Origin: Salisapilia sapeloensis CBS 127946
Taxonomy: Eukaryota; Protista; Oomycota
Direction: 5' to 3'
NCBI GenBank assembly: GCA_023334545.1
Contig: JAADVB010000154.1
Coordinates: 1-45,878, forward strand
Length of the DNA: 45,878 nt
Positions within the stretch are counted from its first letter, which is position 1. Each line of letters starts with the position of its first letter. A program made the translations under genes and the position numbers. Of this stretch, positions 21,950-43,083 are shown one piece after another. Under the pieces are notes generated by a model that had not been told where the DNA came from, made no database searches, and saw nothing but the letters and a program-made list of their open reading frames with translations.

Positions 21950-23623
21950 TTAAGGACATCCAGAATTGAATGTTATAATGGAAAAAATCTGGTAGTTGGT
22001 GATGCCTATCAACGTAAGCATCGCGAGGATGAAAAACGTATGCCGGCGCACTTGACGGTAATCGAGTCCGTTGTAGACTTCAATAAAGCATGAGATTGTA
22101 TCTGCTACCAAGTTCATCGTTGCACTGATGAAGAGTAGCAGTGTATCGTCTGCTGTGAAGTCTACACTTGACGAACCAGCATTGGCGTCAGTCGTTAGAG
22201 CGTGCATACTAGCTGAGTCACACTTTGTCGTCTCGAGTAGCTGATGGTATGGATGCTCCAGGTAAATGTGTATGACCGACGTTACTGTAAAGAGGGCAAT
22301 GTACTCGGAGCACATATCGGCATAAAGCTCAGCAGTGTTCAGTGCTACTGATGTTCTAGTTGCAACCGTAACGGCGGCATACTCATCTATGACATGAGTC
22401 GCTCGTCTTGAGGATATTTTCTCGGGCACGACTGTTCGACGTTTTAATTTTCCTTTGCGGAATTTTGGATTTTTCAGTCGACGTACATGCAGCTTAATCC
22501 AGGCGAGTTTTGCTATCCGGACGCCTACTTTTCCTAGACTCATGACAAACGCTCCTTGAATTTGTGCTTGTGTTCCTTTTATAAAACGAAGCACGACCCG
22601 TGTTTGTGTGTCAATTATAATGGTAACTGTAGAAATAGCAGCCACCATTATCTTCAAGTCATACACCTTGAAAAAGACTAATACTTTCTTACATCCCTCT
22701 TGCATGCACAATTTAAATACAATGCTTGCAGATGCAAACAATATTGGTTTAACTTTGGTAATCACAGATGTGTGGATAATATTCACATAGATGGCAGCAA
22801 CGGTCATCGCTAGTACCCATACTGAGTTGCGAACCAAACACAGGCGCATAAGTCCCACTACTGAGCGTTTCCTTCTTGATTGAATTTCACTGTTTTTCTC
22901 TTTCTCCTCTCTTCCAATCTTCCTAGTCATGTACTCGGAAGGAATAGAGCCAACTAACAAGCACAGCATTCCTAAAAGCCACTCACCATTTACGTATGGT
23001 ATCGATTTAGCAGCATACGATTCCCATACCCACATACTTGCCACAATACATCCAAGGGTCAAGATTTGAAAAGGCAGCGCAACCCTACGTAGCAAGTAGA
23101 TATAATGAAGTGTCGCTTGTATCATGTTAACTTTCACTTCTCTCTTTTGTCGGTCCTTCGCTAAAGTATTCGCATTGATGCAGTCAAAAAGGAGAAACTG
23201 AACCATAGCACTTGTCACCAAAAGACCAGACAAGTATTCAGTATTTGACTGGTCTTGAACAGGTTTTCCACTAGTCCAATCTCCAAGCACACATACAATG
23301 TTGATGACACTTGATATGCATTGGCAGGCGATGGAAAGTAGCAGAGTATTCAGGATAATATAAAGTGTTTCAACAATGGTTTTGCTGATGACCGCAAATC
23401 GCGATGATCTCAGCGATAAAATAGAAGTTGTAGCAGGTACAACTTGGTGGTTATGTCTGAGTCTCAAGGTGCTATAGTAGCTTAAGGTGCCTGGTCGATT
23501 TATGAACTCCAAAGAAGACGTATATCGTGGTCCATCCACCGATCTTTTCGCGCAACTGTTCTTGAAGGCACCAACAACAACTATGGCATTGCTAGGGTGC
23601 TTGTCATCTTCATGACCTTCCAT
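21950..23623 (-). CDS. Oomycete-type multipass transmembrane protein (paralog 1)
   Basis: 557-aa intronless ORF with many hydrophobic helices. It shares FKxCMQE, IIIDxQTRxVL and AELYADMCSEYIA motifs with the neighbouring gene. Confidence 0.8.
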   Translation of the reverse strand: MEGHEDDKHPSNAIVVVGAFKNSCAKRSVDGPRYTSSLEFINRPGTLSYYSTLRLRHNHQVVPATTSILSLRSSRFAVISKTIVETLYIILNTLLLSIACQCISSVINIVCVLGDWTSGKPVQDQSNTEYLSGLLVTSAMVQFLLFDCINANTLAKDRQKREVKVNMIQATLHYIYLLRRVALPFQILTLGCIVASMWVWESYAAKSIPYVNGEWLLGMLCLLVGSIPSEYMTRKIGREEKEKNSEIQSRRKRSVVGLMRLCLVRNSVWVLAMTVAAIYVNIIHTSVITKVKPILFASASIVFKLCMQEGCKKVLVFFKVYDLKIMVAAISTVTIIIDTQTRVVLRFIKGTQAQIQGAFVMSLGKVGVRIAKLAWIKLHVRRLKNPKFRKGKLKRRTVVPEKISSRRATHVIDEYAAVTVATRTSVALNTAELYADMCSEYIALFTVTSVIHIYLEHPYHQLLETTKCDSASMHALTTDANAGSSSVDFTADDTLLLFISATMNLVADTISCFIEVYNGLDYRQVRRHTFFILAMLTLIGITNYQIFSIITFNSGCP

Positions 23624-23932: not shown

Positions 23933-25582
23933 TCATGTGCATGTTCGCTTAAGATAAACAAGAGAGTATATCTGAACATTAGCAACTGCGATGAAAATGA
24001 ATATAGACAGCATAAACATGCGATGCTTCCAAAGTGTCCGGTATTCCAAACCGAAAGAGATTTCAATGTAGCAAGAAATCATATCCACTGCAATCTCCGC
24101 AAGCATCGAATAAAATGCTGGAAGTATGATCGACTGTAGTTCATCAAAGTGATGGATATCGTGACCATCGTACATGTCTTCATTGCCAATTAGATCACAG
24201 CCAAAGCTTGTAGTCAAAATGGACTCTTGCTTTCGACTAGTATGGTTGAGCCATACGTGACAAGCAGCACAGCAGATCGCAATGTACTCGGAGCACATTT
24301 CAGCATAAATTTCTGCCGTATGTAAAGATAATATCATGTCCTTCCCTTGTACAGTGTTTAAGCAGTAGTCGTCGTCAACATTGCCGCTGGATGGCGTCAA
24401 CGACTTCTGACGGGACGTCGCTCTACTCTTTAAGTAGTGATCGTATGCTTTAATGATAGTTAGTTTGCCCATCCTTAAAAGCGTTTCTGCAGCAGACATC
24501 AACATAATGCCGGTAATCTCGATAACTGCGCCTTTGCTCCTTCGGAGTACAATCCGTGTTTGGCAGTCAATGATAATGGTCGAAATAGAAATAGCAGAGA
24601 CCATGACACGAATGTCCCTGATATTACCAGCAACGAGCAAGCGCTTGCTCAGCTCTTGCATGCATACTTTGAAAAAGATGCTGATACCAGTAAAAAGCAG
24701 CGGGTTGACATGCGACGTATAGTAAGAATGGATGGCTTGCACATATATCGTCGCTACTGAAATACTGACGATCCCAGCTAGCATCTTTGCCAGGCTACGT
24801 AAGAAGTTGTGTAGAGCGGATATGTGCGTGATGATCAAATTCGGATTTGCCTCCTTTGTTTCCAGTCGGCGAATCTTCTTCATCCTGATGTCCATTGGCA
24901 CAGAGTAAAGTAAGCTGCACAAGAAGGCCAAGTACAATTCCCCATTGGTAAAGAAGTACCGACTTGGGATCAAGCACTGCCAAGTCCAGACCAAGAGGAT
25001 AGATATAGTCAAAGCTACGACATAATAGAGAATAGTGTGGCGAAGCAATGTGCCAAAATACTGGAATGCAGCTCGCTTGATGTTAATCCGACCCGACATT
25101 CGATTTTTCCTGTCACTTGCAAGTAATGCTGAGTTCATCATGCAAAGGGCAATATACTGAAGAGTAAATGTGATCAGAAGAAGCCCAGAAATGTATTGAG
25201 CATCCGTCTGGTCCTCATCACCTTGGGCACCAAACAAGTATCCTCTTAAAGCAGCATAATTCGCTGCGAAAGATATGACCAAGCAAATAAAGGAGGGCAG
25301 TTGCGCATTTGCAACTGTAGAAATGGAAAGTTCCATAACTTGACGGAGCGATTTCCTAGTAGCTTTTCGTATAGATGCTTTGGCGAGTTTTGCGATTCTG
25401 CCCGAGCTTTGCTTCATTACCACTCTCATTGCAGAAAACTTCTGAGATGGTAGCTTAATCAGATCTTGTTTTGATTGCCTATCATGAGAAGCAGAATGCT
25501 GATTCAGCTCTTTGTTCTGTTCGGGAATTTCGTCTCGGGGCTTCTCATCTTCGCTCCTTGCAGGCACACAATGAACTCGCAT
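23933..25582 (-). CDS. Oomycete-type multipass transmembrane protein (paralog 2)
   Basis: 549-aa ORF with FKVCMQE, IIIDCQTRIVL and TAEIYAEMCSEYIAICCA. Tandem paralog of 21950-23623. Confidence 0.8.
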   Translation of the reverse strand: MRVHCVPARSEDEKPRDEIPEQNKELNQHSASHDRQSKQDLIKLPSQKFSAMRVVMKQSSGRIAKLAKASIRKATRKSLRQVMELSISTVANAQLPSFICLVISFAANYAALRGYLFGAQGDEDQTDAQYISGLLLITFTLQYIALCMMNSALLASDRKNRMSGRINIKRAAFQYFGTLLRHTILYYVVALTISILLVWTWQCLIPSRYFFTNGELYLAFLCSLLYSVPMDIRMKKIRRLETKEANPNLIITHISALHNFLRSLAKMLAGIVSISVATIYVQAIHSYYTSHVNPLLFTGISIFFKVCMQELSKRLLVAGNIRDIRVMVSAISISTIIIDCQTRIVLRRSKGAVIEITGIMLMSAAETLLRMGKLTIIKAYDHYLKSRATSRQKSLTPSSGNVDDDYCLNTVQGKDMILSLHTAEIYAEMCSEYIAICCAACHVWLNHTSRKQESILTTSFGCDLIGNEDMYDGHDIHHFDELQSIILPAFYSMLAEIAVDMISCYIEISFGLEYRTLWKHRMFMLSIFIFIAVANVQIYSLVYLKRTCT

Positions 25583-26386: not shown

Positions 26387-29300
26387 ATGCGATCTTGCCT
26401 GCATTCTGTTTTATTTTGTGTCGCGGTCTTCGGACTATGGTCATTTGCTGAACCGGACCTCGACGATTTGCTTTCTCCGTTTCTGGACTTGAATCATCTA
26501 TCCGACGATCTCGAGCAGGTCCTCGAATTATTACCTTTAGCTTTTAAAGACGATGGCGACATCGAACAACAGAGGCTACAAAATTCTAACTACTTCGCAC
26601 AAGCTGAAATGCATGCTCTCGTTCAGTTGTATCAGGAATGCGCTACAGCTGAGTCTAATGCTTTGAAGACATGGTGTGTCGGAAATGAATCGTCATATCC
26701 TGTAGACTTGGAGAAAAGTATGTTGTGTCCACGCAAGCGTTGGACGCACCCGTGTGGAGATCAGCTGCTTAATTACACTAAAGACAGCAATACATCGGGA
26801 TTTTGGCAGGGCATTCAGTGCACTCTTCATACGGATCCAGTGACAATTACTCACATATACCTACCAAGTCAGCACTTAGAATGCAACCTGAGCAGTGTTA
26901 ACTTGGGCATGATGCAATCTTTGCAATCGTTGGATCTATCCGGCAACTCTATCACTGGAGAAATTCCAGTTTGGATTCAGGAGATGAGCTCACTTCGCAT
27001 CCTTCGCCTTAGTGGTAATTACTTAGTTGGAGACATTCCGATTGAACTGGGATCCAATCACCAACTTGAGACTTTAGATCTGTCGAACAACCAGCTACAA
27101 GCGTCATCCCTTGGTATTTTGCGAACACTCCCTCAACTTCAGATTATAGACTTAGCGAACAACCGCATCGCAGCTTCTTTTGATGGAAATGATATACTAA
27201 GCCGTCGCGTTAGCTATCTAAATTTGAGTCGCAATCGCATCACTGGATCCCTTACCAACCTTCCATCATTCAGTGAAATCGTTGTCTTTGACGTATCACA
27301 CAATGAGCTCCATGGAAACTTATCGACAAACATGAGGACGTGGGGCCTTCTCGATCCGGACGACCCAAGCTTTTATTCGTCTTTACAGATTATAAATGTG
27401 TCAGGGAATGCACTTGCAGGGCCTATTCCAGATTTGTCCCTACAAACCTCTCTACGAGTATTCGACCTCACTAGCAATTCATTTACTGGAAAAGTACCGA
27501 TGTTGCCTCATATGAACAGGAGCGAGCTTCATATCGATCATAACTTATTTACGTGCCAGGTTGAGGCAAGGAATAGACGGCTAACTCAGTCATGCATATG
27601 CACTAGTAACCATACATTTGTGCTATTGGATATGCAACAATGGACTGTTCGAAGTGTCGACACGAAGAATTGGAAAGCTGGTAGTCTCATAGTGGACGAT
27701 AGACACAAATTTCAGGCGTGCCCAACGCATCGAAATGTAACTTCATTTATAAAGGAGTATTGTGATTCGTGTCCACCAGGGTATTTCTATGATGAAAGTA
27801 GAGAACCAAGTGCCAGTCACGTTAACTACAGCTTCTGTGAACCTTGTGCGTCAGGTACCTATTCAATGACAACAGGCTTTGAATCGTGCTCGTATTGCCC
27901 TCGTGGAACTAGTACAGAAGGAATGATTGGGCAAAGGGCTTGCTTATTATGTTCTCCAGGTACATATAGCCCAATACTTGGGCAAAGTACATGCCAATTA
28001 TGTCCTCATGGATATTTTACTGGTAAGCATGGACAAGGGAAATGTCAGCCATGTTGGCCGGGTACATTTTCCGACGTTCTAGGTGCTGCAGAGTGCTTTC
28101 AATGTCCTCCTGGACAGCATCAAAATCACTCGGATGCAGATCATTGCGATTTGTGTGAGGAGGGAAGTGTAGCACCAATGGAGGGAAGTACGAAATGCAC
28201 CTCATGTCCTAGGGGTACATTTCACGACAGTGCTAAGCAAAGTTGCCTCAAGTGTCCGCAAAATAAGATCGCAGAGGAACCAGGTCAGCTAGATTGTAAG
28301 ACGTGCTTGGATGGGTATATGGCCATGGAGTATGAATATGGTTATCGCTGTGTGCCAAAGAATTTAACAACTGGAGTGGAAACTAAGCGAGGAAGCACAA
28401 CAAAGTCATTATATCAACCTTGCCGACCTGGTACCTACAATAACGGAGGCACAAAATGTCAACGCTGTCCGAAAGGTTCGTTTGCCGCTAACAGTGGATC
28501 ATTTGAGTGTCAACAATGCCCTAAGGGTACATTTGCAAACTCTCGTGGAAGTGTAGTATGCAGTGATGCACAACCAGGCTTCTATGTGAATGTTCGAGGA
28601 GCCCATTATCCGACTTTATGTCCTCAAAACACGTTCACGAATAAGAATCGATCAACTACTTGTATGCAATGCCTATATCCTAAATACCGGACGTGGCCAG
28701 GTGGAAAGAAGTGTGACATCATCAAGGATGGACAAATTATCAAGTACATCGACTGGCCACTACTCACATTCCAGGTAAAAGGCATCGACATGGACCGTGG
28801 ACTTAAAAGAACGCTTGTAGAAAACATTGTGAAAGCAGTGAAAGACATATTGGCTGGCTATACTTTTGATCAACCGATCGTTCATTTCATTTCAAACCTT
28901 CGAGACGATAATGAGATCAACGTGACACTAGCTTTGGAGCCGCAGTCTTTGAAAATGCCGGATGAACACAATATCAAGCGTCCTTTTGAAAGCATAAAGA
29001 GACTTTTCGAGCCTGATGATACGATCAAGGACGAAAGCAGCAGCCCTGAGGATTGGACTGGTACGGTGATCGCACTGCCATCCGCCACAAGTATTCCCAC
29101 CGCGCTACAATTTGTACGAACCAAGAAGTTCATCCGACTACTGATTCTTGTACTGGAAGCATACCACGATAAGAAGGTAGAACCACAACCAATAACACAG
29201 TTCACAATTCGTGTTATGTCTGAAAATGACCGCCTTAAATCACTGCAAGCTGTAGCATGTCCTGCAGGCTCCTACTATTATGTTGCTGATTCCGCAAATC

Positions 29301-29686
29301 GGTCGTCTGCAAGATGCCTTGATTGCCCGCTAGGAACGTATAACTCGGAGGAACAGTCACTCGTATGTAAATCATGTCCAAAGGATACTTTTGGAGATAA
29401 AGAAGGATTGACTACCTGCAAGAAGTGCCCTTTCGGTAGTGCTTCTCAAAATGGTGCTATAAGCTGCACTGTTTGCACATTTCTTTCTACCGAATGCCGA
29501 GACTTTTATGAAGACCTCTTTTTAACATTTCTTGCTGGGATGTTGCTACTTGTTGTCGCACTCAAGAGGTTAAGAAGGTTTGTTAATACCAATCCAAACG
29601 ATAATGATCGTACGGAGTGTGCTGCACTGATGACACAGGTTCGAAGCGTCGGACGAGTATATGCTGGAAGCGAAGAAAGTAGCTGA
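26387..29686 (+). CDS. Single-pass receptor-like protein: signal peptide, plant-type LRRs, Cys-rich ephrin-receptor-like (GCC2/GCC3) repeats, TM helix, short tail
   Basis: N-terminal hydrophobic signal and a WQGIQC N-cap. Repeated LxxLDLSxNxLxGxIP (~26900-27550). Many CxxCxxGxY/F repeats (~27760-28720 and ~29250-29490). TM LFLTFLAGMLLLVVAL followed by KRLRR. Confidence 0.85.
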   Translation: MRSCLHSVLFCVAVFGLWSFAEPDLDDLLSPFLDLNHLSDDLEQVLELLPLAFKDDGDIEQQRLQNSNYFAQAEMHALVQLYQECATAESNALKTWCVGNESSYPVDLEKSMLCPRKRWTHPCGDQLLNYTKDSNTSGFWQGIQCTLHTDPVTITHIYLPSQHLECNLSSVNLGMMQSLQSLDLSGNSITGEIPVWIQEMSSLRILRLSGNYLVGDIPIELGSNHQLETLDLSNNQLQASSLGILRTLPQLQIIDLANNRIAASFDGNDILSRRVSYLNLSRNRITGSLTNLPSFSEIVVFDVSHNELHGNLSTNMRTWGLLDPDDPSFYSSLQIINVSGNALAGPIPDLSLQTSLRVFDLTSNSFTGKVPMLPHMNRSELHIDHNLFTCQVEARNRRLTQSCICTSNHTFVLLDMQQWTVRSVDTKNWKAGSLIVDDRHKFQACPTHRNVTSFIKEYCDSCPPGYFYDESREPSASHVNYSFCEPCASGTYSMTTGFESCSYCPRGTSTEGMIGQRACLLCSPGTYSPILGQSTCQLCPHGYFTGKHGQGKCQPCWPGTFSDVLGAAECFQCPPGQHQNHSDADHCDLCEEGSVAPMEGSTKCTSCPRGTFHDSAKQSCLKCPQNKIAEEPGQLDCKTCLDGYMAMEYEYGYRCVPKNLTTGVETKRGSTTKSLYQPCRPGTYNNGGTKCQRCPKGSFAANSGSFECQQCPKGTFANSRGSVVCSDAQPGFYVNVRGAHYPTLCPQNTFTNKNRSTTCMQCLYPKYRTWPGGKKCDIIKDGQIIKYIDWPLLTFQVKGIDMDRGLKRTLVENIVKAVKDILAGYTFDQPIVHFISNLRDDNEINVTLALEPQSLKMPDEHNIKRPFESIKRLFEPDDTIKDESSSPEDWTGTVIALPSATSIPTALQFVRTKKFIRLLILVLEAYHDKKVEPQPITQFTIRVMSENDRLKSLQAVACPAGSYYYVADSANRSSARCLDCPLGTYNSEEQSLVCKSCPKDTFGDKEGLTTCKKCPFGSASQNGAISCTVCTFLSTECRDFYEDLFLTFLAGMLLLVVALKRLRRFVNTNPNDNDRTECAALMTQVRSVGRVYAGSEESS

Positions 29687-30310: not shown

Positions 30311-31349
30311 ATGGTCAACTATCTGGGTTTCCTCGCAGTAGCATCCACACTGCTGTCGACTGCACTCGCTCAATACGCAGCTCCTGGCGCATGCTCTGGC
30401 ATTTGTGTTAACACGCATGACCCATCCGTCGTGCGCCGCGAAAGTGATGGCACTTACTTCCGTTTCAGCACCGGAGGCAAGATTGCAGTTCACTCTGCTC
30501 CAGGTATGCTGGCGACATTTACACCGCCCTATTGATCACATTGCTAATCAACTTAAATATTATGTAGACATTAGTGGACCGTGGAAGTACGAAGGTGCAG
30601 CGATTCCTGACGGTTCGATCATCAACCTTAAAGGCCGAGATGACTTGTGGGCTCCGGATGTCACGCTTATTGGAGACACCTACTATCTTTACTACACTGT
30701 GAGCTCGTTTGGTTCGCAAAACTCTGCTATTGGTTACGCCACCTCTCCTACAATGGATGTTGGCTCATGGACGGATCATGGCAGCACTGGCATTCAAAGC
30801 GGAGCAGGCAAACCATACAATGCGATCGATCCAGCTTTGATTTGGGCAAACGAACAGTTCCACATGACATTTGGCAGTTTCTGGGACGGCATCTACCAAG
30901 CGTCGATGGCTAATCCGCCAACAAAGGTAACTGGATCGGCCCACCAAGTTGCTCTGGAACCAGTTACGACTGCTGTGGAAGGCCCTTACGTCTTTACCTG
31001 GGGAGACAACTTCTACCTGTTCTTCTCGGAAGGAAAATGCTGTGGCTTCGACACTGACATGCCAGCGAAAGGAAAGGAGTATAAGATCATGGTATGCCGC
31101 TCCAGAGACCCGACCAGCGGTTTCGTTGATGCGAATGGCAGGGATTGCCGAAACGGTGGTGGTACTGTGGTGCTCGAGAGTCATGACAACATCTACGGAC
31201 CTGGCGGCCAAGGTGTCACGATGGACTCCCAGTACGGCCCTATTCTCTATTATCACTACGTTGACACCAACATCGGATACGCGGACGGTGACAAACGCTT
31301 CGGATGGAACAAGCTTGACTTTTCGAGTGGATGGCCGGTGGCCTTGTAA
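30311..31349 (+). CDS. abnA: Secreted GH43 endo-1,5-alpha-L-arabinanase, fungal AbnA type; exons 30311-30503 and 30568-31349
   Basis: Signal peptide, then [17 protein letters not shown]...DLWAPDV...NAIDP...FGSFW...VEGP...GKCCG...VYGPGGQG-type...GWPV. The catalytic Asp/Asp/Glu are present. The 64-nt GTATGC..GCTAAT..TAG intron restores ...SAPDISGPW. Confidence 0.93.
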
Positions 31350-31952
31350 GCTTTAGAAAATGTCATTTTCACTTGGTTGAGGCATTCAAGCACATTGAGA
31401 AATACAACTTATCTTTAGTGTTGAAAAGCTTCCTTTCATTATTAGATGGCATGCAGTATTCTTCACTATCTTATTTGCTCAAGCTGTGCTGAGATACTCT
31501 TCTGTAATCTTTCCTGAAAGCTATAAATGTTCTACGCCATCTTATAAACGATCGTTGCTTTCATTTGTTATTCAGTCATCTGGTCATCATTCGGATCTTT
31601 GGTAGGTACCTGCATTGTTATCGATGTATCTGTCGTTATCTAGCTTACTTTATGTTCGCAAGCATCGTCGCCAGACTTCACATGAAGCCTGCCTTTGACC
31701 GTCTACTCCATTTGAGATGAGGTCAATTGTCAAAACGTCAAAAGTATCAGCTCGCGGTCAATCTTGTCAATCAAGATGCTTCCCAAGAAACAGCTGTGTA
31801 TAACGCAAGACCACTTGCTTGGATACGAAGATACGAGGCAGTATGATGCCAAACATCAATAATCATGATCGAAGTGCTGTTGATCGCAGCAGTGACCAAA
31901 CAACCACGTGGAAATAGAGAAGGACGTGAAAGCGCTGTTGTGACTTAACTTC

Positions 31953-31967
31953 TCACTTTTCATTTCG
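31953..31967 (+). promoter_or_regulatory. INR+FPR-like core promoter of the AA17-PL1 gene
   Basis: TCACTTT-T-CATTTCG, about 35 bp upstream of the ATG at 32000. Confidence 0.6.
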
Positions 31968-31999: not shown

Positions 32000-33802
32000 A
32001 TGAAGACCGGATTTGCTACTTTCGGGGTGGCCGCTTCGGCTATTGCTGCTCTCTCATTGCTACCAGAGGTAGAAGGCCATGCCTATCTCATCTCTCCTCC
32101 GCCGAATTGGGCAGTCCCCAATCACAAGGACTGGTACAATCCACTAGCCTTCCTCGAAGGCTCTGGCGTGCAGACGTCCGATGATTTGCCTGGATTCATG
32201 CGAGCTCACGGTTACGCGACGTTGCGTGACATGTTGGACGATGAGAACCTGTACAACGTTGACCCAGGTCTCGACTGGCACTGCGGTCTCACGACCACGG
32301 ACACTCCAGTCCCGATCCCGGACACGAATTCTCTTCGCCTCACGGGCTACACGCACGACGGTCCGTGTGAAGTTTGGCTTGACGACACGCTTGTGCAGTC
32401 TGGTCAGAATTGTCACGCAGAGTTCCCAGGCAAGGGACAGGAGTTTGACTACAGCGCCTGTGGCGATGGCTGCATGCTGCGCTGGTACTGGCTCGGTATC
32501 CGTTACTTGAAGAACCAGTGGTCGTGGCAAGTGTACAAGAACTGCGTTCTGCTTGGCAACGGCAACACGGGAGGACGTGCAGCCGCTCCTGCTCCTTTCG
32601 GCCAAGAAGCGCAAGCTCTTCCGGCAGCTCCTGCACAGAAAGCTGCTGAACCTGTCGCGGATGTCATGGCTCAAGGCGCTTCGAACTACGTCATTGGAGA
32701 CGCTCCGGGCTATGCAGTAGGTACGACTGGAGGTGCTGGTGGCAAAGAAGTCACTCCCAACACGATCGAAGAGTTAAAGAACTACTTGTACGCGGATGAG
32801 CCGTTGGTCATCCTCATTACGAAGAAGTTTGACTTCACCGGTACGGAAGGCTCCAAGACTGACAAGGTGTGTGCTTCCCACTACTCTGTTCAGTGTCCCG
32901 ACCAGGCTCAGTACGTGATTATCGACGGCGACATTGGAAACACTGGTGGATGTGATGGTGACTACACCCAACAGGACTTCACGTGGGACTTGGCTGGCCA
33001 GACTGCTTTGCGTGTCAAGGGCGACAAGACTGTCCGTGGTATCGGCCAAAGCGGTGAGATCGTCGGCAAGGGACTCAAGGTCGTCGGTGACAACGTTATT
33101 ATCCAAAACGTGTACATTCACGACATCAACCCTCAATTTGTGTGGGGTGGTGATGCCATCGCCATTGACGGTGGAAACCAAAAGCCAGTGTCGAACGTGT
33201 GGATTGACCACGTCCGTATCAAGAACATTGGTCGTCAAATGATCGTTACGCACTACGGTGGAGCGAGATCGACGACTGTCTCGAACAGTGAATTCGATGG
33301 TACCACCGCATACTCTGCTTCGTGTGATGGACGTCACTACTGGACCTTCCTCATCTACGGCACGCAGACCAGCATCAGTCTCCTCGGCAACTACGTCCAC
33401 GACACTTCTGGACGATCTCCCAAGGCCCAGGGTAACGAAGGCCAGCCGACGTACGTGCATGTTGCGAACAACTACTGGGCCAACAGTGCTGGTGTCTTTG
33501 AGCTTTCGGAGGACGCTTACGTTCTTGCGGAAGGCAATGTCTTCGAGTCGGACGAGTGGTCGGACCAGTCGAAGAGCAACTTCTTCTTTGCTACGGATGG
33601 TGCGGACTGTTCGGCCCTCGGACGTGACTGTGTTGCGAACCAACTTTCCGGTTCAAGTGGCGTCCAGAATGTGAACGGTGCCGCTGTCCTGTCTGGTATT
33701 TCGTCTCAATACAGTGTCAAGAACTACTCGCCAACGAGCCCGAAGAAGCTGTCTACCGGATCGTCTTTCTTTGGTGTGAACGGCGTGGAGCCATCGCTGT
33801 AA
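32000..33802 (+). CDS. Secreted bifunctional protein: AA17 lytic polysaccharide monooxygenase + Ala/Pro linker + PL1 pectin lyase
   Basis: A 26-aa signal ending in VEG exposes His1 (32078). The GYTHDGPCEVWLDD, MLRWYWLG and WQVYKNC motifs are AA17-type. After the linker come GTTGGAGG, IIQNVYIHDINPQFVWGGDAI, VWIDHV, IGRQM and SGRSPK, which are pectin lyase motifs. One open 600-codon frame. Confidence 0.9.
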   Translation: MKTGFATFGVAASAIAALSLLPEVEGHAYLISPPPNWAVPNHKDWYNPLAFLEGSGVQTSDDLPGFMRAHGYATLRDMLDDENLYNVDPGLDWHCGLTTTDTPVPIPDTNSLRLTGYTHDGPCEVWLDDTLVQSGQNCHAEFPGKGQEFDYSACGDGCMLRWYWLGIRYLKNQWSWQVYKNCVLLGNGNTGGRAAAPAPFGQEAQALPAAPAQKAAEPVADVMAQGASNYVIGDAPGYAVGTTGGAGGKEVTPNTIEELKNYLYADEPLVILITKKFDFTGTEGSKTDKVCASHYSVQCPDQAQYVIIDGDIGNTGGCDGDYTQQDFTWDLAGQTALRVKGDKTVRGIGQSGEIVGKGLKVVGDNVIIQNVYIHDINPQFVWGGDAIAIDGGNQKPVSNVWIDHVRIKNIGRQMIVTHYGGARSTTVSNSEFDGTTAYSASCDGRHYWTFLIYGTQTSISLLGNYVHDTSGRSPKAQGNEGQPTYVHVANNYWANSAGVFELSEDAYVLAEGNVFESDEWSDQSKSNFFFATDGADCSALGRDCVANQLSGSSGVQNVNGAAVLSGISSQYSVKNYSPTSPKKLSTGSSFFGVNGVEPSL

Positions 33803-35071
33803 GATCGAATGCGTCTGATAAATAAGCAAAGGATGTTTTCATGATGACTTCAATACACAAATGTTAATTTGCAAGTAGTTGTTTCTTGGCCAAGATTTGA
33901 ACATGTACGCTTCATTACTGCTTATAAGATTTAAACTATCAGTAAGAATAGATCTACAAACCAGTACGCTTCATCCGTGGCTGCACTACTCGCCAAATTT
34001 TTTCAACACATCCCGGCAATGCCCATGTGTCCATGCAAAAATGTGCTCTCTGTAAATCGAATGAAGACGTTGTTACACATAGAAACCTTGACGACGTATG
34101 CTACTTGATTGGAAGCGCCAGCAGATATAGCAGCATTTCCGATACTCTAGCTTTTCCGCATTCAAATGGATTCATGTTTTGTAGGTGCGAGATGTCGAGT
34201 CGACTGGAAGTAGATTGTTCGCCTTTAATACGCAGGTAGAATTTTTCGTTTAACACTTTGGTTTGCCCATCGCCTGGTCGCGCCTGACTCTACCAACGTG
34301 GATGTCTTTTCGGTTTAACAATTCGTACGTGAGTGCAGGACAGCGTATGGGAATTCTGCAAAACTTTTCAAAAGGATTAGCTACCGACTGCGCTGTTTCT
34401 ACTCTCTATGAAAAGATCAGCTAGAGATTTCCAATAGCCTATGATAAGGCAAAGTCGGAGGCAATGCGTATGCACATTGCGCATTCGCTTTCGACTTTGT
34501 ATCGTCGAGATCAGTTGACTGCGCGAGAAGTTGCTTTCTAGTAGCTTCAAGTTCGTACATAGACCATCACTTGAATCGATCCTCCACTTTAAACGTCGGC
34601 AGATGGGAGATCATCTGGAACGAGTGTTTCGTAAGCGTGCTTAGACGACACCAAGCAGAATGCTCTCCATTTGTATCCGCATGATCTCCACTCGCTCCCA
34701 TGCCTCTAACCACCGTCGTAGACTAGACCATACCTCCATCTGCATCTTCCTCCTACCTCTTCCCCACCACAAACATGCCAACGTCGATTGCGTTTCCAAA
34801 GTGTACATGCGTTCATAAAAATGCAACTAGAGTCCAATACCTATCACCTCCCTCTTCGTTCAGATGACCGCCGAAACCAGGTGCCTGACGAGTACGCGGT
34901 GTCTGAAGCGATCCGCGTCGTACTTGAGCGAATGAAAACCTGATAATCCACAAGTATCTTGCACTTTGTATACTGGCAAGTAAAGATCTTGGAACTTGGA
35001 CGTTGGAGCTCACAACAACTTTTGCGCCGGAGGAGACAGATCCCAGCTCTGCAACTCGAGGAGGTGGAAAG

Positions 35072-38000
35072 ATGTTTCGATTGCGCAAGTCGGCCGCTTC
35101 GGTCCGTCGCCATAGCCTCCAGCACACGTTGGCGCCTGGTCATGTCGGTTCCATTCGACACCAAACGACTATTAAAAAACTCATGGCAGCCAACCGCGGT
35201 GAAATTGCTACGCGCATTATGCGCGCGGGCAACGAGCTGAGCATTAACACCGTCGGTATCTTTTCCAAGGAGGATCGTTTCACCCAGCATCGGTACAAGG
35301 CGGACGAATCCTTCCTGGTCGGGGAAGGCAAAACACCTGTCGCGGCGTACTTGGACATTCCGTCGATTATCAAGATCGCCAAGGAAAACAACATTGACGC
35401 GATCCACCCTGGGTACGGATTCCTGTCGGAAAACGTCGGTTTTGCCGAGGAGTGTGCCAAGCATGGCGTCAAGTTCGTCGGACCTACGCCGGATAACTTG
35501 CGGACGTTTGGTGACAAGACGTCTGCGCGAGAGATTGCCATCAAGAGTGATGTATCGGTTGTGCCAGGTTCGTACTTTTGCTTTTCACTTTATTCCCATG
35601 GCACATCCTTTGCGATGGTGCAGAGTACATATCTTTAAAGGTCGCTTGCATGTGACTTGATGGGTTGACCTGCATCGTCCGACATGCGATATATCGGTCA
35701 GTTGCTTACAAACATATTCTCAATAGGCACGGATGGACCTGTGGCAACTTTCCAGGAAGCAAAAAAGTTCATTGACTCTGGTGTTGGATACCCGGTCATC
35801 ATCAAGGCTAGTATGGGCGGTGGTGGACGCGGTATGCGTGTCGTCAACTCGGCCGACGAGCTTGAAGAGAATTTTGAGCGCGCGACGTCCGAAGCATTGG
35901 CTGCTTTTGGTGACGGCACGGTCTTCATTGAACGCTACGTTAAGAACCCGCGTCATATTGAGGTCCAGATCTTGGGAGATGGTAAGGGAGAGGTCGTGCA
36001 CCTGTACCATCGTGATTGCTCCGTCCAGCGCCGTCACCAAAAGGTTTTAGAGACAGCTCCTGCTGTGGGACTGGACCCTGTAACGGAGAAGGCGATGATC
36101 GACGATGCCGTGCGTCTCACCAAGGCCGCTAACTACTTAAATGCTGGTACGGTCGAGTTCCTTGTGGATGAGCAAGGCCGCCACTACTTTATCGAAGTGA
36201 ATCCTCGTATCCAAGTGGAGCATACGATCACGGAAGAAATCACCGGCATTGACCTCGTGCAAAGTCAGATCCGTTTGGCTGGAGGAGACAGCTTTGAAGA
36301 TCTGGGACTCTATCAGGACAAGATCAAGCCGCGTGGACATGCCATGCAGTGCCGTGTGACGACGGAAGACCCATCGAAGGACTTCCAACCGGACTCTGGC
36401 GTCATTGAAGTCTTCCGATCTCCCGGTGGAATGGGCATCCGTCTCGATGACGGTCCTGGTTTCGTCGGTGCGCACATCACGCCGCACTACGATTCCCTTT
36501 TGGTGAAGGTGACGGCTAGAGCGCTGGAACGTGAGGACGCTGCCCGCAAGCTACGCCGAGCACTGTCTGAGTTCCGCGTGCGTGGTGTGACCACAAACAA
36601 GAGCTTTTTGCAGAACGTGTTGAACCACCATGACTTTGTGCACGGTACGGTAGACACGGGCTTTATCGCAGCGAACCCTCAGTTGCTCGAGCCTTCGCGA
36701 TCGACCAACCGTGGACAGAAGCTATTGAAATACATTGGTAACACGATTGTCAACGGACCGGAGAAGGCACTTGGCGCCACTGGCGACGCACCTGCGAACG
36801 TTGACGCCACGAAGCTTATCCCGAATATCCCGGAGCCTTCGAAGAAGTCCAAGTCGTTGCGTGAAGTGTACACTTCGCAAGGCCCCGAGGCATTTGCCAA
36901 GGCTGTGCGAGAGAACAAGGGCGTCTTAATCACGGACACGACATGGCGTGATGCCCACCAGAGTCTCTTGGCGACTCGTCTGCGTACGAGAGACATGGCT
37001 GCGGTTGCGCCTGCAACTGCCAATGCTCTGCACAACGCCTTCTCGCTCGAGATGTGGGGTGGTGCGACGTTCGATGTGTCTATGCGTTTTCTTCGTGAAG
37101 ACCCGTGGGATCGTCTGACAGAATTGCGAGAAATGGTTCCGGACATTCCGTTCCAGATGCTCCTTCGTGGTGCCAACGCCGTCGGATACACGAGTTACCC
37201 GGACAATGTGGTGTACAAATTCTGTGAACAAGCACAAAAGTCTGGCATGGATGTCTTCCGTGTCTTCGATTCGCTCAACTACCTCGAGAACATGCGTCTA
37301 GGCATTGATGCAGTCGGTGCTGCTGGTGGTATCATTGAAGGTACTGTGTGCTACACGGGTGATGTGACGAACCCAGGCAAGAGCGTGTACACGCTGGACT
37401 ACTACCTCGACTTTGTGCGCCAACTAGTCGACCTCGGCATTCACACGTTGGCGATTAAAGACATGGCTGGTCTGCTCAAGCCTCAGGCCGCCAAGCTGCT
37501 TGTTTCGAGCATCCGACAGGAGTTCCCAAACCTTCCGATCCACGTCCACACGCACGACACGGCGGGTACGGGTGTGAGCTCCATGCTGGAAGCGGCGTAC
37601 GCTGGTGCCGACGCGATTGACGTCGCGACGGACGCCATGTCCGGCACGACTGCCCAGCCATCGATGGGTGCGGTCGTGTCTGCTCTGCAAGGCACCGAGT
37701 ACGACACAGGTGTCGACCCAGCGCAGATCAACTCGATCAACGACTACTGGGAGACGCTTCGTGGTGTGTACGCTCCGTTCGAGTCCGGCCAGAAGTCTGG
37801 ATCCGCCGACGTGTACATGCACGAGATGCCTGGTGGACAGTACACGAACTTGCTGTACCAGAGTTCTCAGCTCGGTCTCGAAGGCCAGTGGCCGGCGATT
37901 AAGAAGGCGTACGCGACGGCGAACAACCTTCTCGGAGACATCATCAAGGTGACACCATCGAGTAAGGTCGTGGGTGACTTTGCCCAGTTCATTGTGCAGA

Positions 38001-38815
38001 ACAACTTGACGGAAGAAGAGGTGGTGGAGCAAGCGGAGAAGCTGTCGTTCCCGAAGAGTGTCATTGAGTACTTCCAAGGCTACCTTGGTATCCCTCACCA
38101 CGGCTTCCCGGAACCTCTCCGATCCCGTGTGCTCAAGGGCAAGACGCTTCCAAATGGCAAGACCATGTTTGAAGGTCGACCTGGTGCCGAGATGGATCCG
38201 TACGACTTTGACGCGGCGGAGAGTCAGCTCAAGGAAAAGTACGGAGCAGACAAGATTCGCGACCTGGATGTCATGTCCTACGCCATGTATCCGGATGTGT
38301 ACGAAGACTTTATGCGCTTCAAGGACGAGTTCGGGTCGATGCACTACCTCGACACGCGCACGTTCCTCGCCGGTCTCGAAGTCGGCCAAGAAGCGACGTT
38401 GGAGATTGAGCACGGCAAGACGATCTTTGTCAAGCTCAAGGCGCTTGGCGAAGCGAGCAAGACGGACGGCATGCGCGACGTGATCTTTGAGCTCAACGGC
38501 CACCAGCGTGTGGTGCGTGTCAAGGATGAGGCGGCTGGTGCGACCGAGATGGCCAAGCCCAAGGCGAATCCGTCGGTGGCTGGATCGGTCGGTGCCCCAA
38601 TGCCTGGTGTCGTATTGGATGTGCGTGTGAAGCCTGGTCAGGTCGTGGAAGAAGGCGCTCCGTTGGTGGTGCTCAGCGCCATGAAGATGGAGACGGTTGT
38701 GGCTGCCCCTGTGGCTGGAAAGATCAAGCAGATCTTTACGAGCGTCGGGGACAACATGCAGGGCGGCGACTTGATTGTCGACATTGATGAGGCTGGTGAA
38801 GCGGATGAAGAGTAA
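35072..38815 (+). CDS. PYC: Pyruvate carboxylase with a probable mitochondrial presequence; exons 35072-35567 and 35727-38815
   Basis: [25 protein letters not shown], spliced [43 protein letters not shown], biotinylation motif AMKM. 159-nt GT-AG intron. Confidence 0.97.
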
Positions 38816-39864
38816 ATGAAAATCGGTTTATGACTTTGGAATACATCCTTATAAGATTGCTTCCGTAGTGACTCGTAGGCAAGGGATGCATGTATCCTCG
38901 TCTAGCGTTGCTTAGTATATATCAGAGCTGCATGTCGCGTGCCTTTCTATAGGAAGCTTGGAAGGATTGATGGAGAGCGAGTAACCTTTAGTTTTCAGTC
39001 GCGTTGCATCGTTGTTTTCTGGTCGGAGGGTTTAGCTGAGATAGCGTCAACGACACACAGTATGTGGTAAGACATCGATCCGAATGCAGTGAAGGATGGT
39101 CTGCTAGAGGTGGATAGCGTGGTCATAATGACCTTGGCAGACGAGCGAGGTAGTTTGTAAATGACGACCGACGAAGTGATATACGATATGAATATTAATT
39201 AAGAAACCACGGTAGCTTCCTCGAGCAAGAGACAAAGTGCCGAGTCAGCGCGACACGAAAGAATCCAAACGCAGAGAATCATCAGATGGAAAGTAGCTAT
39301 GTGATGATGCTATGTGGGTTGTGATATCTCGTGTCGTACTCATGTCCTTCTTCTTGCGCGTACGTCATTTGCAACGGCAGTACGTCGGATTAGGATCTCT
39401 TAGATACCCAATCAATCAAGACTGGATAGACTCTTCTAGTCGACGAATATCGACAAAGTTCATACGACCACATCTACATATCGTCTCTAGTATGTTACAC
39501 ATTGTGTCCCATGGACACCTCGTGCTACATCGCGTTCTGCGGTCTAATACAGTTCACAGCGTTCCTTCGCTGTCGTGTCACGCATATCGCATCCATCTCC
39601 ATCTCTCCTTCCAGTAAAAATGTCGAAAGTGTACCTAGCACCTCGGTGTCGAAACTTGGCCGCCACGTGCGCTCGATTCGATTCCTTCCAACGCATCCTT
39701 GCCGTTGCTCTGGTCGTCCGAAGGTCCTCTGTATGGCCTGATCGTCTGCTCGCATGTCGTCGCAACAGCATTACATGCGCACGGACATTCGGTTCTCACT
39801 CCGCTTTTTCGCCTTCCTATCGCACGAGGAGCGAGCGTTTGGTATTTCGCTATTTGCTTTCATC

Positions 39865-42800
39865 ATGGCATCCAACAGTGCAGTCCAGGCCAAGATGAAC
39901 GACCTGCTCATGGTCGATTCAGCAGATGAAGCGCATATTGTCCAGGAGATCGTCCAGCGATATCGACAGGGCTATGTCTACACGTTCCTCGGCCCAGTGC
40001 TGATCGCCATGAACCCGTATCGACAGCTTACGAACAAGGACGGAACGTCCATCTACGACATGAGTCTCGTGAAAGACTTTTCAGGCAAAGAGCTCCATTT
40101 GTGCGACCCACATCCGTTCGCGATCGCCGAGGCGGCGTACACGAACCTCATGCGATTTAACAATGACCAGTCGATCCTCATCACAGGGGAATCTGGTAGT
40201 GGCAAAACAGAGACGTCCAAGCACGTCATGCAGTATCTCACGACCATCTCGACGCGCAGTCGAGCTCGCAGTGCAGTCATGGCCAATCGTCGGCTGTCGG
40301 TGGCACAGCGACAGGAGGTAGATGACCTCATCGGCAGAGTAACAGAAGTCCTGTGGGGCTCCAACCCGGTCTTGGAAGCCTTTGGCAACGCCCAGACGAT
40401 CCGAAATAACAACTCGAGTCGATTCGGCAAGTACATTGTCCTCCAGATGAACCGCATTGGACAGGTGACAGGAGGGTACATTGACAACTACTTGCTGGAG
40501 CGTTCTCGAGTCATCCAGCAATCCGAAGGCGAGCGGTCGTTCCACATTTTCTACCAACTCCTGGCTGGTGCGACGGACAAGCAGCGAGAGGAGTTTGACC
40601 TCTTGCCTGCTGACGAGTACTCGTTCCTGTCGAATGGGGATGTGACGATCGATGGCGTAGATGACGCTGCGCACTTTAAGCACACGATGGAGAAGATGTC
40701 GGCCGTAGGTGTCACCAAGGAGGAGCAGCACCAGATCTTCCAGCTCTTGGCGGCAATTCTCTGGACTGGTAACATCCAATTCACCGAGACGACGGACGAG
40801 GCGCACAATAAGATCGCCAAGCTGGATGGAGAGGATAGTCGCAAGGCTTTACAGAACGTCGCGCGTCTCCTAGGTATCGAAGAGCAGCGTCTAGAGAACA
40901 TGGTGTCGTATCGTACGCTGAACATCTACCGCTCGGACCAGCAGCTTCTCTTTGACGCTCGTCAAGCACGTAAAGTGTGCGACTCGATCGCTCGGTCTAC
41001 GTACGAAAAGCTCTTCAACTGGCTCGTCGGTCGTATCAACCAGAACGTCCACGTCGATCCGAAGCACGTGAGCAACTGCGTCGGTATCTTGGACATCTAC
41101 GGCTTTGAGATTTTTGAGGTGAACCAGTTCGAGCAGCTGTGTATCAACTATGTGAACGAGAAACTTCAGCAGCTCTTTATCTCCCAGACGCTCGAGCGAG
41201 AGCAGGAGGAGTATAAGAAGGAGGGACTCAAGTGGGATGGCGTGTCGTACTCGAACAACCAGGTCGTGTGTGACTTGATTGAGAACCAGAAGACTCATGG
41301 ACTCTTCCCGCTCCTAGATGAACAATGTGCCATCTCGCGATTGGACACGCTGGAGCTTATTGAAAGGTACAATGCGGCGCATAGTAAGAACCCGGCGTAC
41401 GTTGCGAGTCGTATCCAAGGTCCGAACTTTTCTGTCAAGCATTATGCCGGAGAAGTCGAGTATGACGTGACGCTCTTCTTTGAAGCGAATGTCGATACGT
41501 TCTTCAACGAGATGCATGAAGCCATGGCAGACTCGACCGTCCCGTTCGTCCGAGACATCTTTGTCGACGAACGGACGGACGCCGAGAAGAAGAAGCGACC
41601 GCCATCCACTTCGCAGCAGTTCCGTTCTCACGTCGCATCACTCCTTAAGAACTTGGAAGGATGTAACCCGAACTACATTCGATGCGTGAAACCGAATGAG
41701 AAGAAGCAGCCACTAGCTGTGAGTGAGAAGCTCGTGACGGAGCAAGTGCACTACCTCGGTCTCGTGGAACACCTCCACGTACGTCGTCAAGGCTTTTGCT
41801 ATAGCGAGACGTATGCCAACTTCCTCAAGCGATACAAGTTCCTGTCGCCTCGGACGTGGCCGGATTGTAAGGAGCATTCGTCTCGTAAAGCTGCCGTGGA
41901 GCTCTTGACGGATCCGAACCTTGGCATCCCAGATGTCGACTCTCCGGCTCTCATCCCGTTTGAAGAAGACTCGAACACGCTCGGATGCTTTGCACTTGGT
42001 CGCTCCAAGATCTTTTTGAAACACCCACAAGCATTGTCTGCGTTGGAGATGGCTCGAGAGAGAAACCTCCCGGTCATGGTAGCTCTCTTGGAGAACACTT
42101 GGCGTCGGTATAAGAACCGACAGGCGCTTAAGCTCTTCATGAGTGCCTCGACAGAGCTCTTTACAGCGCATGAGAAGCTCATGGGAAACTGTATTGAGCG
42201 TCGGAAGCGTCGGGTGGAAGATAAGGAGCGGAAGGCAGTCTTGTATCTCCACTGGAATGATCTGTCGTCCAAGCTCCTCAAGGACGAGAGTCGACTGTCG
42301 GCGCAGCTGCAGGAACGCGAGAAGGAGAACCTGGTTATCTTTACCCAGAGCTTTGTACGCATGCAGATCGCTCGACGACGTCTGCTCAAGATGAAGAAGG
42401 CGCAGCAGATGGTCAGTAAGGTCTATCGGGGCGTCCACACGAGGCAGCAGATGCCTCCGAAGCTGTATGAAGCCTGTAAGCAGGTGCTGCTAGGCATTCG
42501 TACGGACTTTGAGAAGTTTATGGGCGAGAAGAAACGGAGACGAGACTCGCTCGATCGACCGTGGACGCAGGATTACATTGGGATGAAGCAGCTGCCGGCG
42601 TACTCGACGCTCGTGAAGAATAAGAAGGAGAGGCATGTCAAGTTTGTGGCGCAAGTGGACAAGGTGAATGAGCGCTTTGTCCACCAGTCGCGCGTGTTGC
42701 TCGTGTCCGATCGATACTTGTTCAATCTCAAGGCCGAGCCACTGCAGAAACCAAAGGAGAGGCGTGTCGTAGACTTGACGAAGCTATCTGGCATTGTGAT

Positions 42801-43083
42801 GAGCACCCTTCCGGATGACTTTGTCCTGTTGCGCGTGAAGAATGAAAACGACTTGCTCTGTTCGTGTGCTCAGAAGACCGAGTTCGTGTCTGTATTGCGA
42901 GAACGAGTGGAGAGTCTTAGTGGAAGGCAGCTGCCGGTCGAGTTTTTGAGCGAAAGTGAGTTTTATGGGGTGAAAGGTAAGCCTCTGATGCTCAAGTTTG
43001 AGGCCCAGTCGGCTGCGCAAAAGGTCGAGTGTGTCAAGCAGGATAAGAAGACCATGGTCGTGCGCGTACCTGTGAGTCTGTGA
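39865..43083 (+). CDS. MYO1: Class I myosin (motor + IQ neck + TH1 tail)
   Basis: GESGSGKT P-loop, LEAFGNAQTIRNNNSSRFGKY, GILDIYGFE, NYIRCVKPN, IQ-like motifs and a C-terminal TH1-like region (VDKVN...RVLLVSDRYLFNL). Likely ATG at 39865. Confidence 0.93.
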   Translation: MASNSAVQAKMNDLLMVDSADEAHIVQEIVQRYRQGYVYTFLGPVLIAMNPYRQLTNKDGTSIYDMSLVKDFSGKELHLCDPHPFAIAEAAYTNLMRFNNDQSILITGESGSGKTETSKHVMQYLTTISTRSRARSAVMANRRLSVAQRQEVDDLIGRVTEVLWGSNPVLEAFGNAQTIRNNNSSRFGKYIVLQMNRIGQVTGGYIDNYLLERSRVIQQSEGERSFHIFYQLLAGATDKQREEFDLLPADEYSFLSNGDVTIDGVDDAAHFKHTMEKMSAVGVTKEEQHQIFQLLAAILWTGNIQFTETTDEAHNKIAKLDGEDSRKALQNVARLLGIEEQRLENMVSYRTLNIYRSDQQLLFDARQARKVCDSIARSTYEKLFNWLVGRINQNVHVDPKHVSNCVGILDIYGFEIFEVNQFEQLCINYVNEKLQQLFISQTLEREQEEYKKEGLKWDGVSYSNNQVVCDLIENQKTHGLFPLLDEQCAISRLDTLELIERYNAAHSKNPAYVASRIQGPNFSVKHYAGEVEYDVTLFFEANVDTFFNEMHEAMADSTVPFVRDIFVDERTDAEKKKRPPSTSQQFRSHVASLLKNLEGCNPNYIRCVKPNEKKQPLAVSEKLVTEQVHYLGLVEHLHVRRQGFCYSETYANFLKRYKFLSPRTWPDCKEHSSRKAAVELLTDPNLGIPDVDSPALIPFEEDSNTLGCFALGRSKIFLKHPQALSALEMARERNLPVMVALLENTWRRYKNRQALKLFMSASTELFTAHEKLMGNCIERRKRRVEDKERKAVLYLHWNDLSSKLLKDESRLSAQLQEREKENLVIFTQSFVRMQIARRRLLKMKKAQQMVSKVYRGVHTRQQMPPKLYEACKQVLLGIRTDFEKFMGEKKRRRDSLDRPWTQDYIGMKQLPAYSTLVKNKKERHVKFVAQVDKVNERFVHQSRVLLVSDRYLFNLKAEPLQKPKERRVVDLTKLSGIVMSTLPDDFVLLRVKNENDLLCSCAQKTEFVSVLRERVESLSGRQLPVEFLSESEFYGVKGKPLMLKFEAQSAAQKVECVKQDKKTMVVRVPVSL

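Follow-up and report, generated by a model that had tools for sequence, protein, structure and literature searches.

Few lytic polysaccharide monooxygenases (LPMOs) carry a second catalytic domain, and the sole studied example is bacterial and chitin-directed. This enzyme, Jd1381 of Jonesia denitrificans (AA10-CBM5-GH18), is the only characterized bicatalytic LPMO, and its linked form performs better than the separated domains (PMC10154629). Oomycetes secrete LPMOs of another family, AA17, of which the enzymes PiAA17C (structure 6Z5Y), PsAA17A (8S6S), and PsAA17B (8S71) are known to bind copper and to cleave homogalacturonan oxidatively; the latter two cut de-methylated pectin at C4 (PMC11992081). 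An AA17 LPMO of Phytophthora infestans has a disordered tail with a high content of Ser, Pro, and Thr (PMC8615602). Here, we describe a gene found in the oomycete Salisapilia sapeloensis CBS 127946, in which an AA17 domain is joined to a pectin lyase of family PL1 in one polypeptide. The window, that is, the whole stretch of DNA that was analyzed, comprises 45,878 nucleotides (contig JAADVB010000154.1 of assembly GCA_023334545.1, positions 1 to 45,878, forward strand), and the gene occupies positions 32000–33802 of the plus strand. The gene, which has no introns, is probably genuine and encodes a bicatalytic secreted enzyme of about 62 kDa, which likely performs a tethered attack on homogalacturonan.

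Like Jd1381, the protein has an N-terminal LPMO tethered to a second catalytic domain of a carbohydrate-active enzyme (CAZyme), and the two domains would act on the same polymer. Jd1381, however, is a bacterial, chitin-directed protein with a hydrolase as the partner and a carbohydrate-binding module (CBM) between the catalytic domains, whereas the fusion described here is eukaryotic, would be directed at pectin, has a lyase as the partner, and contains no CBM. The AA17 domain resembles PiAA17C and PsAA17A/B in the fold, the pair of histidines of the copper brace, the axial tyrosine, and secretion by an oomycete, but it is only about 27% identical to them and belongs to another clade. While the P. 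infestans AA17 LPMO mentioned above ends in its disordered tail, the AA17 domain in the window leads to a second catalytic domain. The PL1 domain shares with pectin lyases A and B of Aspergillus niger the equivalents of Asp154, Arg176, and Arg236, the WIDH motif, and the disulfide cysteines, and it is 43%–49% identical to lyases of Phytophthora, Globisporangium, and Pythium, including their C-terminal extension. The stand-alone PL1 lyases have a signal peptide of their own; the PL1 domain in the window has none and is preceded by the AA17 domain and a linker.

Secreted proteins in which two catalytic domains are connected by a low-complexity linker are also found among other oomycetes. PL1-PL1 tandems of 778–996 aa are present in many Phytophthora species and in Nothophytophthora (P0001–P0020), with Thr/Pro/Ser/Ala-rich linkers of 50–120 aa, and AA17-AA17 tandems are present in [Pythium] brassicae and P. 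lilii (P0022 and P0046). In contrast to the fusion, these tandems repeat one domain and have longer, Thr/Ser/Pro-rich linkers, and none of them mixes AA17 with PL1. Multi-catalytic pectin enzymes thus seem to recur in oomycetes. An earlier note on this DNA, made from the sequence alone, had stated that the AA17 proteins known to its author are single-domain or carry disordered tails. This description is too narrow since, besides the AA17-AA17 tandems, distant AA17-like proteins of Saprolegniales (P0220 of Saprolegnia parasitica, P0221 of Achlya hypogyna, and P0217) have a C-terminal CBM1 or PAN/Apple module.

The open reading frame (ORF) comprises 600 codons without interruption, including the ATG start and with the stop codon at its end. 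Downstream of an in-frame stop at 31946, no other ATG precedes that at 32000, and the start is unambiguous. The predicted signal peptide (aa 1–26, 32000–32077, plus strand, as for all parts of the gene) has a hydrophobic core at aa 5–21, and its cleavage is predicted after the motif VEG, immediately before His27; the homologues of the AA17 domain have a His in the same column behind a similar leader. The leader is followed by the AA17 LPMO domain (aa 27–189, 32078–32566), a linker rich in Ala, Pro, Gly, and Gln and predicted to be disordered (aa 190–230, 32567–32689), and the PL1 pectin lyase domain (aa 231–600 and the stop codon, 32690–33802). The AlphaFold model of the full-length protein contains two confident domains separated by a low-confidence tether at aa 190–246. 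An N-terminal LPMO and a second CAZyme catalytic domain, AA17 and then PL1, are therefore present in one polypeptide, which is the architecture of a bicatalytic LPMO.

The earlier note had proposed the same general reading, an AA17 LPMO and a pectin lyase in one secreted chain, and it is upheld by the location of both domains in the same frame behind a single leader and by the agreement of sequence, profile, and fold. The particulars on which the note had relied were also recovered. They included the unbroken 600-aa ORF and the cleavage site at VEG, behind which His27 (codon at nt 32078) aligns with the first residue of the mature chains in the AA17 crystals. The second histidine, proposed in GYTHDGP, is His119 (nt 32354), aligned with His96 of 6Z5Y, and the tyrosine proposed in WQVYKNC is Tyr179 (nt 32534), aligned with Tyr164 of 6Z5Y. 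The Ala/Pro linker of about 40 aa corresponded to aa 187–230, which are Ala/Pro-rich by composition count, and the lyase motifs were located as VWIDHV at aa 400 and SGRSPK at aa 470, the latter with Arg472. Here and below, residue pairings with 6Z5Y and with pectin lyase A were counted along the printed alignments.

Pfam contains no AA17 model, and none of its models matched the N-terminal domain. A phmmer comparison of this domain with all solved structures returned matches to three AA17 LPMOs only, namely 6Z5Y (PiAA17C; aa 27–185, E-value 2.4e-21), 8S6S (6.5e-21), and 8S71 (1.3e-18). The profile made from the alignment of the clade to which the domain belongs matched the same three structures along the whole domain, from residue 1, with E-values from 1.7e-42 to 1e-38. 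In the Foldseek search, 8S71, 6Z5Y, and 8S6S ranked first (TM 0.73–0.75, E-value about 1e-12), while the other LPMO families AA11, AA16, AA9, and AA10 gave E-values of 0.01–0.2 and TM below 0.45. The AlphaFold confidence score (pLDDT) exceeded 90 over aa 30–189. The domain contains six cysteines, at positions 95, 123, 138, 154, 158, and 182. By sequence, profile, and modeled fold, the N-terminal domain is an AA17 domain, in agreement with its earlier assignment, which is also backed by the brace residues.

The search with the AA17 domain revealed about 100 related oomycete proteins of about 200 aa, 45%–54% identical to it and mostly unannotated, which occur in Phytophthora, Globisporangium, Pythium, Plasmopara, Bremia, and Peronospora. 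In the alignment of 28 members of this clade, Tyr179 and five of the six cysteines were invariant, and His27, His119, and the sixth cysteine were conserved in at least 90% of the sequences. The same clade includes PITG_18450 of P. infestans (P0185), 45% identical to the domain in the window and included in the list of 31 AA17 genes for that species (PMC8993506, supplementary file 7). The assayed enzymes, PiAA17C and PsAA17A/B (PMC11992081), all belong to a different clade. The clade of the window domain, so far uncharacterized, has only about 27% identity to the assayed AA17s, and the activity of the N-terminal domain toward pectin is putative.

Several AA17 proteins of the clade (P0128, P0133, P0137, P0160, and P0180) bear the name "thioredoxin reductase" at NCBI, and the AA17 list also contains PITG_18452 (3285 nt), named "thioredoxin reductase 1." In Globisporangium splendens (L003, 4700–14000), six AA17 paralogues adjoin a gene for a pyridine-nucleotide disulfide oxidoreductase. 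The label probably spread to the AA17 proteins from a merged gene model.

The C-terminal domain (aa 231–569) matched the A. niger pectin lyases A and B (1IDK, 1IDJ, and 1QCX) with phmmer E-values from 7.7e-63 to 1.4e-59, the lowest being that of 1IDK, while the pectate lyases reached 1e-5 at best. The earlier suggestion that the lyase motifs are those of fungal and oomycete pectin lyases is confirmed by this match to 1IDK. The Pfam family PF00544 was recognized with 36.9 bits at a cut-off of 24. The predicted structure is a right-handed parallel beta-helix, rich in beta-strands and of high pLDDT, and Foldseek superimposed it on 1QCX, 1IDJ, and 1IDK with a TM of 0.77. Asp385, located in WGGDAI, aligns with Asp154 of pectin lyase A, Arg412 with Arg176, the Val four residues later with Val180, and Arg472 of SGRSPK with Arg236. 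These residues, among them the catalytic Arg, reportedly distinguish the calcium-independent pectin lyases from the pectate lyases, and the Arg and Val are said to take the place of two of the three calcium ligands. When 38 PL1 proteins from oomycetes and other organisms were aligned, Asp385, Arg412, Arg472, and six cysteines were invariant or nearly so, and the columns of Asp385 and Arg472 were conserved in at least 90% of the sequences. As judged from the sequence and the model, the C-terminal domain is of the pectin lyase type of PL1 and not a pectate lyase; by analogy, it would cleave methyl-esterified homogalacturonan by beta-elimination.

The PL1 domain begins where the stand-alone lyases start after removal of their signal peptides, has no leader of its own, and includes a C-terminal extension, as oomycete lyases typically do. 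It could therefore be exported only by means of the AA17 leader. The start of the PL1 domain at the mature N-terminus of the stand-alone enzymes and the missing leader make a genuine fusion well supported by the sequence. The order of the domains conforms to this, as multimodular LPMOs always have the LPMO at the N-terminus (PMC10154629). Because the brace His must be the N-terminus, AA17 followed by PL1 is the only order that an LPMO would tolerate.

The segment aa 187–230 consists of 14 Ala, 5 Pro, 5 Gly, 4 Gln, 1 Ser, and 1 Thr among 44 residues, and pLDDT was below 50 over aa 190–246. No dibasic processing site was found in the linker, the KK pairs being located solely within the lyase. 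The possibility that the linker is an unspliced intron was considered and rejected since its G+C content is 61% and it consists of Ala/Pro codons, unlike the AT-rich GT..AG intron of the neighboring GH43 gene described below. The G+C content of third codon positions (GC3), at 0.69 for AA17 and 0.63 for PL1, agreed with that of the pyruvate carboxylase (0.66) and myosin (0.69) genes of the window, so that neither half looks foreign. The GC3 of the linker was 0.37, a value calculated from 41 codons only; it hints that the linker may be younger and may have originated from formerly non-coding DNA.

The earlier note had proposed an architecture search for this combination, and AA17-PL1 proteins turned up neither in the two large protein collections nor in the papers searched. 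When 5.8 billion protein clusters were searched with the full-length protein and the hits parsed into domains, PL1-PL1 tandems, AA17-AA17 tandems, and single-domain proteins were retrieved, but no AA17-PL1 protein. An exhaustive phmmer search without a word index revealed no protein matching both halves among 1.84 billion representatives; the fusion would outscore all single-domain matches. When all 488 fetched proteins were searched with profiles under lenient E-values, the result was noise only, and a scan of metagenomes with the AA17 alignment found a single weak, short locus. Exact look-ups of two proteins of the window, the fusion protein among them, returned no record, and the papers searched contained no description of an AA17-lyase fusion. 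Two kinds of candidates were rejected. The AA17 protein P0380 (765 aa) is merged with a sulfate permease, probably through an error of the gene model, and the PL1 proteins with N-terminal extensions contained ricin-B, Flg_new_2, or unrecognized regions but no LPMO. The AA17 loci examined consisted of arrays or single genes, the six tandem paralogues of G. splendens being an array, and no PL1 gene was found beside the AA17 genes at the fetched loci of G. splendens and P. ramorum and in two Logan contigs. The loci of myosin orthologues in two Logan assemblies contained neither AA17 nor PL1. The combination of AA17 with PL1, and of an LPMO with a lyase, is new, while both families and bicatalytic LPMOs as a kind were already known. 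To our knowledge, this would be the first eukaryotic bicatalytic LPMO.

The following mechanism could be proposed. Removal of the signal peptide would expose His27 as the N-terminus of the AA17 domain, where copper would be bound by His27 together with His119, and Tyr179 would occupy the axial site. The domain would oxidize homogalacturonan, by analogy with PiAA17C and PsAA17A/B, presumably at C4 and in de-esterified stretches. Pectin lyases favor methyl-esterified stretches, and the PL1 domain would cut by beta-elimination through Arg472. The Ala/Pro-rich tether of 40–55 residues is expected to be flexible, so that the binding of either domain could hold its partner near the same polymer; if the chain stays intact after secretion, as we suppose, the two domains may act in synergy.

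Several observations weigh against a tethered enzyme with two pectin-cleaving domains. The fusion is represented by one gene of one assembly, and no fused orthologue was found in the two protein collections; moreover, the AA17 and PL1 genes are non-adjacent in the fetched related loci. The characterized AA17s prefer de-esterified and pectin lyases esterified pectin, and with these opposite preferences, the domains may not share one stretch of the substrate. The AA17 domain is acidic (pI 4.6), which is not expected of a polyanion binder, and the identity of its clade to the assayed AA17s amounts to only about 27%. The last two points would also suit a real fusion in which the AA17-like domain does not cleave pectin but acts on another substrate, serves as a copper or redox module, or targets the enzyme to the wall, the lyase alone being the cutting part. 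The domain scores 80 bits against the three assayed AA17s and above 200 bits against members of its clade, which is in line with such a function, as is the almost absent expression of the clade member PITG_18450 in one P. infestans infection data set. On the other hand, the pair of brace histidines, the axial tyrosine, and the six cysteines are conserved clade-wide, and the whole domain aligns to the AA17 structures starting at His1. Since the pectin lyase partner and the adjoining arabinanase gene also both indicate pectin, we consider a non-pectinolytic AA17 domain unlikely.

The uniqueness of the architecture to the window and the lack of a record for the exact protein could also point to an artefact or to an accident that is not expressed, in which an assembly collapse, a sequencing indel, or a very recent deletion linked an AA17 gene with the PL1 gene downstream of it. 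The GC3 of the linker, unlike that of the flanking coding DNA and compatible with a formerly non-coding origin, would fit such an event. However, the junction is in frame and free of stops, has a typical Ala/Pro linker, and lies exactly at the expected position of the lyase signal peptide; every catalytic and structural residue tested is retained in both domains, whose codon bias is that of well-expressed neighbors, and comparable tandem fusions are common among oomycetes. An accidental junction is therefore very improbable. There is similarly little reason to favor a precursor that is cleaved in the linker after secretion into separate AA17 and pectin lyase enzymes, an arrangement that would ensure equal co-secretion rather than tethering, and we give it slightly less credence still. 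The linker is indeed long, exposed, and predicted to be disordered, and it is nearly devoid of Ser and Thr, leaving few sites for protective O-glycans, unlike the T/S/P-rich linkers of the Phytophthora PL1-PL1 tandems. But the KK pairs are confined to the lyase and no dibasic site is present in the linker, and Ala/Pro-rich linkers are usually fairly resistant to proteases. A genuine secreted fusion with two domains directed at homogalacturonan thus remains the reading that we prefer.

A second gene for a pectin-directed enzyme lies next to the fusion gene, on the same strand and ending about 650 bp upstream of it. It encodes a secreted GH43 endo-alpha-1,5-arabinanase (30311–31349, plus strand) and consists of exon 1 (30311–30503), which encodes the leader peptide, an AT-rich GT..AG intron of 64 nt (30504–30567), and exon 2 (30568–31349). 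The product was assigned to PF04616 (E-value 5e-30), and its best solved relative was the arabinan endo-1,5-alpha-L-arabinanase 1UV4 (E-value 3.5e-34). As predicted from the sequence, this enzyme, which is not a part of the fusion, would be aimed at the arabinan side chains of pectin. In the interval between the two genes, a degenerate 14-nt consensus resembling the oomycete initiator and flanking promoter elements had an exact match at 31953–31966 (plus strand), 34 nt before the ATG of the fusion gene. This match is an unverified lead only, and the matches to the consensus across the window were not above chance (5 versus 2.75 expected, with 5 or more in 16 of 100 shuffled sequences).

The remaining genes of the window are of an ordinary eukaryotic housekeeping kind and encode NSRP1-like, KN homeobox, Cid1-type nucleotidyltransferase, leucine-rich repeat/ephrin-receptor-like, pyruvate carboxylase, and myosin-I proteins. 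Myosin-I (39754–43083, plus strand) has 60%–63% identity to the proteins of Pythium, Phytophthora, Lagenidium, and Peronospora, 54% to that of Albugo, and about 47% to those of Saprolegniales, none being closer; these values place the host on the peronosporalean side of the oomycetes, in a lineage missing from the searched collections. The pyruvate carboxylase gene (35003–38815, plus strand) has at least one intron, with Biotin_carb_N encoded in the ORF 35003–35638 and the rest in 35684–38815. It adjoins the myosin-I gene here as well as in an oomycete contig from Logan (L001, 13721–17323), although in the opposite relative orientation. The ORF 26387–29686 (plus strand, 1099 aa) encodes a leader-like hydrophobic N-terminus, leucine-rich repeats, six ephrin-receptor-like Cys-rich repeats, and, near the C-terminus, a hydrophobic stretch that may be a membrane anchor; its product looks like a receptor-like surface protein. 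Two tandem paralogous ORFs on the minus strand, 21950–23623 (557 aa) and 23933–25582 (549 aa), are 32% identical over 476 residues and matched no Pfam family. Judging by their hydrophobic stretches, they may encode membrane proteins.

We would put it at somewhat less than an even chance that this is the first case in nature of an LPMO fused to a polysaccharide lyase, that its domains cooperate on pectin of mixed methylation, and that the fusion assigns a role in pectin degradation to its AA17 clade. If so, evolution would have tethered oxidative and eliminative cleavage for pectin too, and the protein would offer a natural model for proximity effects between an LPMO and its partner enzyme. The oligogalacturonides released, with non-reducing ends altered by both reactions, could conceivably be poor damage signals for plants, although this is speculation. 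The absence of the host lineage from the searched protein collections suggests that such architectures are under-sampled. The genome of P. infestans by itself contains 31 AA17 genes, and only a few members of the family have been assayed. The fusion would provide independent genomic evidence on the substrate and serve as a Rosetta stone, assigning pectin to a large uncharacterized AA17 clade of Phytophthora, Globisporangium, Pythium, and the downy mildews.

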